Part shown: positions 4,032 through 11,600 of the stretch, piece by piece
How the letters are laid out: each line of letters begins with the position of its first letter
How positions within the stretch are numbered: position 1 is the stretch's first letter
From: Vitrella brassicaformis CCMP3155
Taxonomy: Eukaryota > Protista > Chromerida
Direction of reading: 5' to 3'
Assembly: GCA_001179505.1 (NCBI GenBank)
Contig: CDMY01000718.1
Location: 62,001-126,000, forward strand
Length of the DNA stretch: 64,000 nucleotides
Made by a program: the position numbers and the translations under genes
Notes under the pieces: model-generated
What the model was told of the DNA's origin: nothing
What the model saw: the letters and a program-made list of their open reading frames with translations, nothing else
Database searches by the model: none

Positions 4032-4847
4032 TTGATGGGTACTTTTTGAAGACAGGCGTGTGTGTGCATTTTTCAAAGCCTTTCTTCATGTCAGATGCAG
4101 GGGGATTGCACTGTCTTACCATGCATGCATTCATTCCATGCATGACGTCTACCTATCCCTCAATTCCAGCCAGCCAGCCAGCCAGCCACTACAGTAAGTA
4201 CTCACTCACGCACTCATACAAGGCCGAGCACAACAAGCAGTGCTTCGCCAACCATCGGTGGCCTGGTAGAGCAGATGGCCGATGCTGCGACACAGCGGGA
4301 TACGGCTGTGTCACTGCGCGGCCATCTGCATCACCGGCGCTCCGACGGACGCACACCGACACAAGGGCTCCATCCATCCATATGTAGCAATCAGCACAAC
4401 ACCATTCTCACAACCAAGTGTACGGTCCACATGCATCTCGCTCTTGTGCCCCCGCACACTGACTGTCATTTCCGCGCCGTCCACCATGCCGACAACGTAC
4501 CTTTAGTGACAAGCTTGTCAGCTTGGCACCGAATGTGCGGCCGAAGGCGATGGTGGATGGGAAGGAAACGCCTGTGTGTGCTAGGGGTCAGAGAGAGAGT
4601 AGCAACACAACCAAACCCTCCCCCCGGGGTGTCTCTGGGTGAAACAAACAGTTGCGCGAGCCGCCCTTCCAGGCCAAAAAACGCACCCACGCATCCATGC
4701 ACATCCAGCCGGCCAGACGTCAACAGCCGAGACATTCGTACGGATATCGTACAGACAGCCGAGCCCCACACAAGACAAGGCAGCCACGCCATCCAGCCAT
4801 CCATCCAGGCCTTCCCCCACTCGTGGTAGGGTCCATGTATTATCATC

Positions 4848-6210
4848 ACGAGCCGACGGGTGGGTCTGGTCTGAGGTCCTCTGGGAGGTCCTCTGGCAGG
4901 ATGAACGTGAGCTCCTTGGGCTTGTGGAAGTCGGGGCAAACCTTGCTGAGATGCGGGTCCGTGTTGACCTACACACACACACACACACACACACACAGGG
5001 AGAGTGAGAGAGGATGCAATGCGTGGCGTGTTTCTGCTCTCAATGGGTGTCTGTCTTTGATACGTACGTTGGGTATTTCGAGTGAATTCTCGTAGATGAG
5101 CCCTCGCCAGCGGCGCGAACGGCGAGCCTCGAGCCACTGCATGTACCGATGGTGGTCTGACATACAGAAACACACGACATTCACACACACACAAAGAAAG
5201 AAGGAAACACATGACATCCTCCAGGAATGCAGCTAAGATGTCTTATACGTTGATCGGCCCACTGACCATAGCTCTGGCCGTACTGGATCCACCAGTAGTT
5301 CTCGAAATACTCGTCGGCATCGAGGCGCCCGTCGTTGGGCTCGCGCGCCTGCATCACGAACGCGATGACGATGGTGGGTCCGAATGTCTACACAGTACAT
5401 ACCGCACACACAACACACAACACAGGGGCGTTTGTCGGCACGATCGATCGGCCGGGCGTGCACCTCTCTGCCTGCCTGCCTGCCTGCCCGTTTGTCTGGC
5501 TGGCAAGTGTGCTGTATACTTACGTAAAAGACCCAGGAGCCCGTCCAGTACATGGAGCGCGAGTAGGCGAAGACGGCCGTCATGATAATCTTCCAGTCAT
5601 ACTTCTGCCACCAAAACGACAGGTCGAAATACGTCGTCAACTCATCTGTCGACACACACGACAAGCAGTTGGGATCTCTGTCTTTTCGACTCCCCTCCTT
5701 CAGGTACCTTACCTTCCGTCATGGAGTTGAGCCATCCACCATAGTTGAGGTTGGCCCCGTGGTGCTCACACCCGGTGTGCATCGGCTCATGAGGCTTGTA
5801 CGGACTGAGAAATTGATCACACAGACACAGACACAGACACAAGCACGGACAGGTGACCAGAGATCACGAGACACGCAGCAGCTCCGCCCTCTCTGCGTCG
5901 CTGTGCCCTTCACGTGGGGCCTCCCTGCCGGCCTGCCTGACGCCGCCCTGCAGCGCCTCCTTGCCTGTCGCTGCCTGATCTGCGTGGCGTGTTGTGGTCT
6001 GTCTGTCTGTGCTGACTCACTCCGAGAAGAAGGGGCATGACATGACGAGTTTGTCCATATCGAGTCCCTTCCAGGGCCGCAGACTATCTCGCACCTGCCC
6101 CGGCCAGCACTGCGTTGACTTCTGGGTGAACCTGTGGGACGTCACCGGCATGTTGCAGCCGTACCGTGGACTGAGCAGCAACGGCGACCCACGCCGCGCC
6201 ACACACCGGG
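4848..6210 (-). CDS. Probable mitochondrion-targeted single-pass membrane protein of about 255 aa; possibly a myzozoan-specific respiratory complex IV accessory subunit (ApiCox-type)
   Basis: Hand-splicing in phase gives MTLARCVARR...PFFSD|PYKPHEPMHTGCEHH...MTE|DELTTYFDLSFWWQKYDW...WTGSWVFY|TFGPTIVIAFVMQAREPNDGRLDADEYFENYWWIQYG...|HHRYMQWLEARRSRRWRGLIYENSLEIPN|VNTDPHLSK...PPVGS-stop. The N-terminus is Arg-rich and lacks acidic residues, and there is one hydrophobic segment. The ApiCox resemblance is from memory only. Confidence 0.6.
4971..4996. repeat. (AC)n intronic microsatellite, representative of many in the window (for example 7286-7310, 20083-20107, 26335-26357)
   Basis: Read directly; located next to 3' splice sites. 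Confidence 0.95.
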
Positions 6211-6346
6211 CGAGCGTCATCGCGCCCGCCGATACCTGCTTTCCTTCTCCTCCTCCACTTCCCCTCAGCTCGCAAATGGTTTTACGGGGGAAGATTGGCG
6301 TCGACTGAAGTGAATTGTCAGCGTGCGGCCGCCTGCGTCTTCCGCC
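6211..6346. promoter_or_regulatory. Putative bidirectional promoter (about 136 bp) between two probable mitochondrial genes
   Basis: Divergent ATGs at 6210 (-) and 6347 (+). Positional inference only; no motif identified. Confidence 0.45.
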
Positions 6347-7726
6347 ATGCTGATGCGCCTGGCTGCGGCCAGAAGGGTAAGCAAAACACACAGAAGCGAA
6401 GGCAGCGCACGAGGGGCGGGGAGGCAGATGCAGATCAGGCTTCGTTTCCACTTGTCTGTCTGTCTGTCCGCTCAGGCGTGTGCTGTTCAGCACGCCGGCC
6501 GTGGCGCGGTGCTGTGGCCGCCTCAACAAACAGCGGCCGGGCATCGATTTTTCAGTACGGTAGTGGTTGCTGAGCATGACACGAAGAAGCTGGTGCCCTC
6601 GACCCTCAGCGCCATCAGGGCCGCACTCGAAATGAAAGAGGGAGATGTAAGCCGAGAAGCCAGCCACACACAGAGGGAGGGAGGGAGGGAGGGAGGGAAG
6701 GGGCACACGCACGTAATTATTGGTCTGTGCGCTGGTTCGTTCAGACCCACGTGTTGGTGGCGGCTCAGCCTGGGATGGCGAGAACGGTGGCTGAGGATGC
6801 CAGCCGTGTGTCGGGCGTCAAGTCGGTCATCGTGTGTGAAGACAATATCTTCAGATACCAGAGACCAGGTAAGGAGGGAGAGAGGGAGAGAGGGAGGGAG
6901 GGAGGGAGGGAGAGGCGGCACACGCATGCACGCGGCTTGGCGAGAGATGTCTGTGGTATCTGCATGGGTGTGCCTGTGTGGTCAGACACCATGTACAAGC
7001 TCCTTCGCAAGATTCGCAAGAGCATGACCATCACCCACCTTGTGGGCAGGTCGGGCCAACCATCCCCACACACCTCATTCACAAACATGGCTTACAAGGC
7101 CTAGCTTCATTCACATGCAGCTGTCCCTTGTGTCTGTGTCTGTGTGTGTCCAGTGACTCCCCGGCAATGCTGGACATCATGCCGACGTGCGCCAAGAAGC
7201 TCAACGGCTACTACGAATACGCCATCACCAAATACGACAGAGAGGTCAGTCCGCCAATCACTTAGCGCAACGTGCCACGTGTTTATGTGTGTGTGTGTGT
7301 GTGTGTGTGTATGTCAGCAACTGACCAAGGACATCAAGCTGTATTTGGAGGATGCGTGGGAGTTCAAGTACAAGGACGACCCCGAGCTCCAGTGGATCCC
7401 CACCAAGCCAGTTGTCACCAAAGACATGATGCTCAACACCGAACCAAACATACTCCGGGTATGTAAAAAACCACCTAAACTAAGCCGCTCACACACACAT
7501 CAGAAGCACATCGCCCTTGCCTGTCGATCAGTGTCTGTCGGTTGACACGACGGCGTATGAGCCTGCGAGTATGGCCGGCAGCCCCGTGCCGGTTGAGAAG
7601 TTCAAGTCGCCCTTTGACCACGGGGAGCACAACAACCCCCACTGGTTTGGCGCCGACTGGCACGGATGGCTCGCCGGATACACACTCATGTCACTCGTCT
7701 GGTATATGAATAAACAAGCCGATTGA
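6347..7726 (+). CDS. Electron transfer flavoprotein alpha-like protein comprising domain I only, with a short C-terminal aromatic/hydrophobic tail instead of the FAD-binding domain
   Basis: Seven exons splice in phase. FFSTVVVAEHDTKKLVPSTLSAIRAA, HVLVAA, ASRVSGVKSVIVCED, THLVGSDSPAMLDIMPTCAKKL and LSVDTTAYEPASMAGSPVPVEK align by eye with ETFA domain I (STLVIAEH...[22 protein letters not shown]...FSVRGTSFDAA). The N-terminus looks like a mitochondrial presequence. Stop at 7726. Confidence 0.75.
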
Positions 7727-8691
7727 CGCACGCACGAGGCAGATGACGGAATATGGAATGTCTGTCTGCTCTGGTCTCTGCTTCGTTCAGGTGGTGTGGA
7801 GTTGGCTGATTGAGGTGTTTCCGTTCGGCTTGATTTGTGCCTGCCCGTCCCTGCTGCCGCTCGTGCAACTGACGAACAAATGGTCTATGAGAAGAGAGAG
7901 GGTGTTGGGTGTGCATGCGAGTGTAGAATATGCCGGCAGTTTGTGATCGATTTGCCTCAAGCTGTCAATCGAGGCTGTCCGTTGTTTGACGAATGGATCA
8001 GGGGAGGGGAGGGGAGGGGAGAGCTGTCTGTCTGTATGGTGCAGTCAGGGCAGTCGTATACATCAGATGATACATTCATTTGTTTCTTCGTTGTGCGTGT
8101 GTGAAGCCGTGCACGCCATGACTCACCCCGTCGCTCTATCTAGATGGTGCAGTGACTCCAACCGTATGTATGTGAATGAAGTCTTTCAACAAAGCCCGTA
8201 TTCAAACGATCAACTGTCCCACTCATCTTGATGAGTTATCTGACGCCCTTTCTTCTGACCCTTGCGGCAGCCCTTCACTCACGCCATGCTTAATCATGTC
8301 CCCACAAAGAAAAGTCCCCCTTCCGTGTCTGCGAACTGACGAAAAAGGCCTGCGGGGACATGTTCTTTTGGCAGGGAAGTGGGACAAGATGGCCTTCGTG
8401 CTGGGCAGCCGGGCTTGTGTGACGACCCAGACCGGCGCTCGTTGCGCTTGAGGCAGCTTCGTTTATGCGGTCCTTTGTTTGGTGTAGGGCTGAGACTCCT
8501 GATACTGTGAGCAGGAACAAATTGGAAAAGGGACTGGCATGTTCATACAAATCATTCAGAAACTCCGAGTCAGAAACCGCGAGACGGAGCACGCATCAGC
8601 TGTACAACATACAAAGTGACTGTACACACCAATGAATGCTACACGATCGATGTTCATTTCGCAGACAGTATACTACATTTCGCAATGGTTG

Positions 8692-11600
8692 TCACTGACT
8701 CATCCGCTTCCCCACGTGTGTCCCTCGGCTCCCTCGTAAGCCCAGCATAACCTGCTCACTGACCAACGAATGGCGGTCAGGGGGGACAGAGGAAGGAGTG
8801 AGGCCTTTGCGCGGACGCCCCACTTGGCTCAGGCGCTTCCGCCCCATGACGTCTCGCGGAAGTCGTTTCACTTCCGGAGCCTCCGGGGCGGACGGAGACA
8901 GCATATGTGCCAGGCTCTGTGCACACAGGGCAGCCGCCAGTCATGAATGCGATAAGCATGTCTCGTGTATTCGACTGACTTACATTGACAAATTCAATTG
9001 CGCTCGGTCGTGATGAGGACGTCGTCTTGCGAAGAGTGCCGGGAACCGGGGGCGCGACCTGAGACACAGAGACAAAGCCAATGACTGGTTTCTTCCCGCT
9101 ATCCACCGTGTCTTGCCCTTCGGCCACCGGCGGATTGGTCTGTTCTGTTGTCACAAGAGAGGCTGCTGCGTCCCTTGGGCCATCGTCATAGATATCGTGC
9201 TGCTCCTCGTGTTGAGACAACGTGCTGCTCCGTCGGCGCACGCTGCTTCTTCGCGAGTCGGCCCCGGCCCCTCCCTTGCCGCTACCCCCAGTGACCAATT
9301 CATTCATGGCCATTTGAAGGGCACCACGTGTGGGGTCGAGGACACCCTTGCCCTCTTTCCATCCGCTGCCCCTCCGACTGGTGACGACAGATTCGGCCAG
9401 CGAGCTGCCCTCAAGAGTGTGGACCGATAGCGTTGAGCCCCGCCGTTTTTCCTCTCCCTCACCCATGTCTCCTTCATCATCAATCTGGCCCTCGCCTTCG
9501 GTCAATGACGCCAATATGTCATGGTGCGGCTGCGAGTCAGAGAAGACGCTTAAGCGAAGGCCCAATGAGGCGCCTTGGGGGATGGGACCAATCGACGAGA
9601 TAGACGCGCGCCCCGTGTCTCCTTCCTCGGCAGCGTGTGTCGGAGCGGCCGCCGCAGGGAGGTCATGCACAGCCGAAAGAGTGACAGGGACAGGTGCTTC
9701 GGGCACTGGCTCCTCTATGCTGCTCGTGTGAGGGACCTCATCGGTTGTTCCCAGAGCGCGATTGAGGTCTTGCAATTCGATGATGTCCTGGAGCTCGTCA
9801 GTCTTCATACGCTCGAATCCCTCCAACTCGGTCTCAGCCCCAAAGTAGTAGGCCAGATCGAACAGCGCCCGACCCATTCTATTCTTCCTTGTACCGCCCC
9901 ATCCCCCGCCTCTCTTGCCGGTACGGATCACGCGAAGGATCATCTCAGGATGAGGCTGCAGCTGCTCGGACAGGCTTGCTGGTCTCTCGCCCATCTCCAC
10001 AGACTCGCCGGCTTTTGGCAGCTCAGTGGGAGCGCCGGTAGACTGTTGTTGCAGCAGACGCCCATATACGGTGTGCGCAGGAAGCCTCTTCGGCTGAGGG
10101 CCCCTCTTGCCTTTGCTGCCAGCTTTTGCCTCTTCATCGAACGGAAGGTCCTTCCATCCCTGCCGCAGCTGCTTCTGGCTCTCCAGCACGCGACGCAGGC
10201 CCGTGGGATTCTTGAGGAGCGGACACTCGAAAAGCGGCTTCCCCCACTCTCTCTTGCTGCCTTCGGTGCTGGTGTCGGACGTGGCGCCTTCTTCAGAACT
10301 TTCTCTTCCGCTCTCCCATCCGCGCGTGCGCCGCGATCTCCTTGCGGATGGAAGTGGCGAAACGGGGCACGACTGCGTCGTCGTTGGCATTCCATCGACT
10401 GGAGAACACACTCGTGTCGTCTGTTCGAGGGCGGTGTCCTTGGAAAGGTAATTGTTGAAGGTATAAGAGTCTCGGAATGCCAGGTTCTTGAAGCGTGCGA
10501 AGAGTTCAGTCGGCGAGAAATAGTCGCCTCCCACGTAGAGCTTCTGTTGAGGAATCGGCGGGGTGAAAGGGCGCCATACGTTCCCTCCTTCACCCAGATC
10601 CCGCCTCACTCTCTTGCCGCTCTTCTCGCCATACCGAGGCCTTGAATCAAGCCGCGTATTCCTCTTGCCAACAGTCACGTCGCCGTCCACTGTCATTCTC
10701 ACTGGCCGGTCCGCTTTGAGCTCACGATCGGCAATCCTCACGCCCTCCCTTTTAGCATCCTTCCGACCTCTGACCGAGACGCTGCCATTCACATCAGATC
10801 CCTTGATCGACTCCCGCTTAACCCGCGGTGTCTCTACGGTGTTCATCTGCTCTGGCACTGGAGACCGGGCGTCTTCAATGGGAAGCAGCGCTTGTAATGG
10901 CTGCGTGGGGGATGTCTTGTGCTCAGGCACGGTCGATGAGATGACGAGGCCTTGCAATGAAAGAAGCTGGTGTATCAGACGGCGAGGCTCTTCTTCAGGC
11001 GATATCCAGCTGAAGGACAAGTCAACGTTATGAGGACAGGTCCCCTGCACGTGTTCTTTGCCCTACTTTGTGTTGACAGAAGCCAGAAGCTGGAACTGCG
11101 GCGCATATCTGAGAGTCCGTTGCTTGTTCCGCAGGAAAGGAGACGTTGAGAGGCTCGGAGCTGCCTTCGGCGCTACGAGCCCCTTCCTGTCCTTGAGCAC
11201 GGTAGACGGCTCCTGGTTGATGACTGCAAGTGCTGCCTGCGGCGCATCGCCGGTCTGGACGGCCTTGGCGATGTGTGATGCCTCAGAGGTACGAATGATG
11301 ACGTCATTGCGGACAGCCTGCGAGACATGAGCAGACTCCGCGAACGTATTCTTGCTTCGTTGTTTCGATTGTTCACCTCGATTTGTTGCAGCCGCTCATG
11401 ATGCCATTCGACCTGTTTTGCATACAAATCGCGCAGGCCTTGGCCAAACACAAAAAGGTCAGAGACAACGGACACAACGACGTGAGCGGCTTGTCGATCC
11501 CGTTGTTGCCTGCTGCTACCTCGCTGCACAGCCCCCGGCAGCCGTGTGTTGGCATCTAGCTTGGTGACCGTCCATACATCCAGACGATTGGATGACACGA

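Follow-up and report, generated by a model that had tools for sequence, protein, structure and literature searches.

The locus and its transcripts

The window analysed here is the whole stretch of 64,000 nucleotides whose position 1 corresponds to position 62001 of contig CDMY01000718.1 of Vitrella brassicaformis CCMP3155, and all coordinates refer to it. An ETF-alpha-like gene is located on the plus strand of this window. It consists of eight exons, every one of which is backed by spliced transcript contigs, and its features are as follows:

6289-6346 (+): 5' UTR; no ATG upstream of 6347, and the extent is the reach of transcript contigs L002 and L003
6347-6376 (+): coding part of exon 1, residues 1-10, start of the predicted mitochondrial presequence; joint 6376>6476, blocks of L002 and L003, donor GTAAGC
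6476-6646 (+): exon 2, residues 11-67; rest of the predicted presequence to about 6547, then the opening strand and helix of ETF domain I (STVVVAEHD...)
6745-6868 (+): exon 3, residues 68-109, ETF domain I; RNA contigs and blocks of L002 and L003
6986-7049 (+): exon 4, residues 109-130, ETF domain I; block of L002 and L003
7154-7244 (+): exon 5, residues 130-160; degenerate GKNxxPR position (SPAMLDIMPTCAK), and insertion 1 (residues 147-157, at 7203-7235)
7318-7458 (+): exon 6, residues 161-207; degenerate RPIYAGN position (KPVVTKD), and insertion 2 (residues 175-188, at 7360-7401)
7532-7603 (+): start of exon 7, residues 208-231; final strands of ETF domain I, to ...PVPVEKF in alignment A2 (described below)
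7604-7701 (+): rest of exon 7, residues 232-264; His/Asp-rich linker (DHGEHNNPH..DWH), then a Trp-rich hydrophobic helix from about 7658
7702-7790 (+): intron 7 (GT..AG); joint 7701>7791 in three runs and in L002 and L003; holds a stop codon at 7724-7726
7791-7809 (+): coding part of exon 8; completes W264, then WCGVG and the stop codon TGA (7807-7809)
7810-8208 (+): 3' UTR, end approximate; the extent is the reach of the transcript contigs

Logan contigs of four runs served as transcript evidence over the region 5600-9600, and spliced contigs were present in three of them (X1, X2 and X8, from two studies). The GT..AG joints in these contigs are 6376>6476, 6646>6745, 7049>7154, 7458>7532 and 7701>7791. 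The JGI transcript contigs L002 and L003 matched the window with 100% identity in eight blocks, and the block borders agree with the Logan joints. The two junctions at microsatellites (6868>6986 and 7244>7318) are given by L002 and L003 only; the Logan contigs hold 64 letters between the neighbours of exon 4. Microsatellites of the types (GGGA)n and (TG)n occur in the introns of the gene, at 6657-6706, 6867-6920, 7130-7150 and 7285-7310.

All introns have GT..AG ends, and the coding exons total 810 nt, corresponding to 269 codons and a stop codon. The spliced product of 269 aa has the C-terminus ...GYTLMSLVW, encoded up to the last joint, followed by WCGVG. It is identical to the public record P0001 ('unnamed protein product [Vitrella brassicaformis CCMP3155]', 269 aa). 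An earlier note, made from the letters of this DNA, had placed the gene at 6347-7726. The start at 6347 was retained in the transcript-supported model; however, the end lies at 7809, since the intron 7702-7790 removes the YMNKQAD and the stop codon that had been read there. The same note had considered splicing from before 7726 into exons for domain II. Such a splice was found (7701>7791), but it is followed by five codons and a stop codon instead of exons for domain II.

The upstream neighbour is a minus-strand gene at 4846-6151 (called in L001), whose 225-aa product has no Pfam match; on this side, RNA contigs lie over 6021-6241, and a minus-strand intron is present at 5646-5712 (CT..AC). 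The downstream neighbour, also on the minus strand, extends from 8692 (ORF 8777-11050 and beyond) and is a very long gene, whose product of 2492 aa contains cyclic-nucleotide-binding domains (PF00027). Introns of this gene, likewise on the minus strand, are located at about 8917-8983 and about 9057-9125.

ETF-alpha domain I and the missing FAD domain

ETF carries electrons as a soluble protein of two subunits; domain I of the alpha subunit is generally regarded as an inert scaffold. In P0001, domain I of ETF-alpha corresponds to residues 35-231, as judged from Pfam, sequence and fold. The Pfam search matched PF01012 at E 8.7e-11 with 42.4 bits (cut-off 26.7), over residues 38-160 and profile positions 1-126 of 181. 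The best relative by sequence among the solved structures is human ETFA (E 1.6e-10), with residues 28-146 aligned to chain residues 12-127. Some of the exons could also be assigned singly. For example, exon 2 alone gave a weak match to PF01012 (E 0.042) and matched human ETFA 1t9g_R at E 0.0011, and exon 3 alone matched the Paracoccus ETF-alpha 1efp_A at the colinear position (E 0.0063); exons 6 and 7 searched singly against the PDB gave no match.

Alphaproteobacterial EtfA genes on plasmids were aligned by tblastn to residues 32-238 with about 25% identity, and the pairwise comparison of Azospirillum EtfA with P0001 reached E 2.3e-16 over residues 39-230. In total, 80 proteobacterial EtfA loci were gathered, and the domain I parts of 63 of them were aligned with P0001 to give alignment A2 (64 rows). 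In this alignment P0001 is colinear with EtfA domain I to ...SPVPVEKF. The homology through all of domain I to PVEK, as read in the earlier note, is therefore confirmed by A2, the tblastn alignments and the PF01012 match.

The AlphaFold2 model based on the 64-row alignment had a pLDDT of 74.9 and a pTM of 0.68. The pLDDT was above 90 over most of residues 34-150 and 200-235, and below 50 over both insertions; a single-sequence model with a pLDDT of 39 was set aside in favour of this one. Foldseek comparison with the PDB placed ETF-alpha chains at the top (1t9g_R, E 2.5e-11, TM 0.75 by target), and the Atlas structure searches agree with this result. ETF beta (domain III) resembles domain I in its Rossmann-like fold and naturally pairs with it. 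In contrast to the alpha subunit, EtfB showed no sequence match to P0001, and the beta chains were retrieved by Foldseek at 1e-4 to 1e-3, about seven orders weaker than the alpha chains. No ETF-beta gene was found in the 64-kb window.

The first 36 residues of the protein contain five R/K and no D/E. The N-terminal 34 residues, Arg-rich and free of acidic residues, sit at the position of the human ETFA presequence, and the junction reads RFFST versus RFQST. Mitochondrial import is predicted from this basic, acid-free N-terminus and from its placement at the human presequence. Judged by sequence and modelled fold, the gene is a strongly diverged, derived paralogue of the mitochondrial ETF alpha subunit (alphaproteobacterial-type, group 1).

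Human ETFA (PDB 1EFV and 1T9G) is the best match in both sequence and fold, and the Vitrella protein shares with it the place of the presequence, a colinear domain I and the same fold. The Vitrella protein differs in that PF00766 is missing and changes affect about 63% of the best conserved positions in domain I, those of GKNxxPR and RPIYAGN among them. Moreover, it has acquired the insertions 147-157 and 175-188, the His-rich linker and the Trp-rich hydrophobic helix at the C-terminus. The stretches unique to P0001 in A2 are residues 1-34, 147-157, 175-188 and 248-269, together with three stretches of one or two residues.

The divergence within domain I is considerable. P0001 keeps 22 of the 59 EtfA domain-I positions conserved at 90% or more in bacteria (37%) and has lost the other 37; whereas each of the 63 bacterial EtfA controls retains at least 83% of these positions. 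In the GKNxxPR and RPIYAGN motifs only the prolines are left. The retained positions are mostly A, L, V, G and P, residues which typically make up the structural core. Retention of such core-type residues, together with the confident fold prediction, suggests selection on the fold and not on ETF-specific surfaces. The interface with ETF-beta may also be gone, and pairing with a canonical ETF-beta is uncertain in view of the 37 lost positions.

The FAD of ETF is bound by domain II of the alpha subunit. This domain (PF00766, with the SGGRG, GASRAAVD, QVGQTGK and GISGAIQH motifs) is absent from P0001 in the Pfam search and from the transcripts; P0001 stops 38 residues past domain I, and the transcripts continue as 3' UTR. 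No coding sequence for domain II was detected in the 64-kb window, either by tblastn with 10 full-length EtfA or among the 40 best matches of a profile HMM in the six-frame translation. Since the FAD-binding domain is absent, the protein itself cannot take and pass electrons as ETF does. The earlier note had come to the same view, namely that domain II is missing and that the protein cannot act as a canonical electron carrier, and it is upheld by Pfam, the transcripts and the window-wide searches; the Pfam pattern it had anticipated (ETF present, ETF_alpha absent) was likewise obtained, with PF01012 at E 8.7e-11 and no PF00766 match. With the FAD domain and most of the conserved domain-I positions, two defining features of ETF-alpha are lost, so that the protein is not a functional ETF-alpha.

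Two weak candidates for FAD-domain sequence were rejected. A possible relic of the end of domain II, seen by tblastn right behind the truncation at 7710-7760 (47% identity over 17 aa) and at 7812-7877, with E 2.8-6, was treated as chance; it was not in the best 40 matches of the proteobacterial EtfA profile HMM in the six-frame translation. The plus-strand segment 50311-50508 recurrently gave weak tblastn matches to EtfA residues of about 215-282, in the FAD part (E 1-8, 23-29% identity), and had no support from the profile HMM; it is possibly an unrelated domain of similar nucleotide-binding fold.

Single ETF domains without a FAD domain are also known from prokaryotes. Ta0212 of Thermoplasma acidophilum (PDB 3FET) is a stand-alone single ETF domain fold, and the ESM Atlas contains bacterial ETF-domain-only clusters of about 190 aa. 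Like the Vitrella protein, these lack the FAD domain; unlike it, they are prokaryotic and have no presequence. The Foldseek match to Ta0212 (E 2e-4) was much weaker than that to human ETFA (2.5e-11), and hence the Vitrella protein has an independent origin, from a full-length ETFA of eukaryotes.

The C-terminal tail and the search for relatives

The tail begins with the His/Asp-rich stretch (DHGEHNNPH...DWH) and ends with WHGWLAGYTLMSLVWWCGVG; five of the eight Trp residues of the protein are within its last 35 residues. In the AlphaFold2 model the terminal helix spans residues 244-266, with a pLDDT of 56-61. The hydrophobic tail described in the earlier note does exist, but it is only moderately hydrophobic. 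Over the hydrophobic helix of about 20 residues, the best 19-residue Kyte-Doolittle mean is 0.83; whereas the usual level for a transmembrane segment is 1.6. The Eisenberg values (<H> 0.5-0.63, muH <0.1) indicate a non-amphipathic helix, and such values are in the range taken as typical of membrane-spanning helices in multimeric proteins. The Wimley-White octanol scale gave a favourable -9.7 kcal/mol, and the simple sum of the Hessa central-position values an unfavourable +5.1 kcal/mol. The Atlas neighbours of the tail model are single helices, several of which are anchors, and they are a weak lead owing to the shortness of the piece. The predicted tail could thus be a membrane anchor or a helix enclosed within a complex, and is marginal as a transmembrane segment.

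Before the hydrophobic helix, the region 7619-7684 (residues 237-258) contains H237, H240, H244 and H251 with D236, E239 and D249, in HxxH and HxxxH spacings. Such a cluster could bind a metal or haem, or may have no meaning.

Relatives of the protein were searched for in several collections. Exon 7 (residues 208-263), compared exhaustively by phmmer with 1.84 billion representative proteins, revealed no relative of the tail besides P0001. The second exon-7 match, P0002 (2518 aa, E 4.8e-13), was rejected as a chance match (ASEAGSPVPLYERTSPLLEADHEE) added up over 19 repeats; P0002 repeats a unit of about 131 aa 19 times in tandem with almost no change. In word-index searches, neither the whole protein nor its residues 30-150 retrieved anything but the protein itself, and a metagenome scan with the protein gave no match. 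An alignment-based metagenome scan, whose patterns were RPIYAGN and GKNxxPR, motifs that P0001 lacks, returned only canonical EtfA with 20-36% identity. Among the solved complexes of the PDB, the exons and the whole protein matched only ETF-alpha itself.

By these sequence comparisons, a close orthologue is absent from the collections searched, and the gene seems confined to Vitrella. A diverged orthologue, for example in Chromera, is conceivable, as the exhaustive search covered the tail exon alone. In the literature no truncated or anchored ETF-alpha was found, and ETF in Vitrella was met only as a listing of ETF-QO. In the supplement of PMC6668581, ETF:quinone oxidoreductase (ETF-QO) is listed for Vitrella as Vbra_4697, which indicates that the acceptor of the ETF pathway exists in this organism.

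Possible roles of the protein

The protein probably has a new role. The preferred reading of this expressed, lineage-restricted gene, with a probability of about 0.5, is a mitochondrial scaffold that derives from ETF-alpha, has been given a new, non-redox use and is probably associated with a membrane. The N-terminal 34 residues would send the protein into mitochondria, and the terminal helix, inserted in the lipid or built into a membrane complex, would keep the ETF-like domain on the matrix side of the inner membrane. In this position the protein would act as a non-catalytic scaffold or tether, that is, as a pseudo-enzyme; an ETF-beta-like partner near ETF-QO might bind to it over the former interface of domains I and III. 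The earlier note had similarly proposed an ETF fold repurposed as a membrane-associated structural or regulatory subunit, for example of a respiratory complex or as an ETF-beta partner. The loss of the FAD domain, the retention of the domain I fold and the gain of a hydrophobic helix are borne out; the membrane association, the place in a respiratory complex and the pairing with ETF-beta are putative. Three search results argue against a conserved myzozoan complex subunit: the tail has no relatives among the representative proteins, the word-index searches gave none close to the whole protein, and no solved complex was matched beyond ETF-alpha.

The gene might instead be a neutral relic, in which a duplicated ETFA lost its 3' half and has been drifting since, transcribed and spliced without a selected function. 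This is unlikely, although several observations are in line with it: of the highly conserved positions in domain I just 37% are left, both signature motifs have gone, disorder is predicted for the insertions, and with no tail relative among the 1.84 billion representatives and no close relative of the whole protein, conservation is unusable as functional evidence. A drifting relic is opposed by the reading frame, which is open over eight exons with GT..AG ends on all introns, and by spliced contigs in every RNA-type run examined. The retained core-type residues and the domain I pLDDT above 90 point to continued selection for the fold. Moreover, the identity of about 25% to EtfA indicates an old divergence, over which an unselected ORF should have been broken.

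A functional protein which is not inserted into the membrane seems distinctly unlikely. Here the Trp-rich helix would be a protein contact, and the protein a soluble matrix regulator or a decoy for ETF-beta or for ETF partners; the helix would pack in the bowl on domains I and III that is normally filled by domain II, or would dock another soluble protein. The marginal Kyte-Doolittle and Hessa hydrophobicity and the low pLDDT of the tail would fit such a contact, and Trp-, Tyr- and His-rich helices are frequent at interfaces. However, with a muH below 0.1 the helix is hydrophobic all round, like membrane-spanning or fully buried helices, and its location at the extreme C-terminus is that of an anchor.

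A bolder proposal, and rather a long shot, envisages a flavin-less 'ETF base' specific to the lineage, of which the protein would be the half that anchors it to the membrane. The partner of the protein would be ETF-beta or a second anchored ETF-alpha-like protein, and the base would dock flavin dehydrogenases or ETF at the inner membrane, beside ETF-QO; alternatively, the His cluster would bind metal or haem in place of FAD. The presence of ETF-QO would also suit a split ETF-alpha, in which a separate gene for domain II supplies a product that assembles in trans with domain I and ETF-beta into a working membrane-tethered ETF, but this is very improbable, because most of the ETF-specific conserved domain-I positions are lost, which is unexpected in a working ETF, the 64-kb window contains no domain II sequence, and a simple gene fission would not leave a hydrophobic tail.

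Chromerids are free-living relatives of the apicomplexan parasites, and unusual respiratory chains are already known in this group. The importance of the putative scaffold is limited by its apparent restriction to Vitrella and by the putative nature of its function. Nevertheless, a domain I kept alone and expressed in a eukaryote, on a possible membrane anchor, would show the reuse of the ETF scaffold as a pseudo-enzyme, and it could hint that chromerids organise the oxidation of fatty acids and amino acids at the inner membrane in a lineage-specific way.
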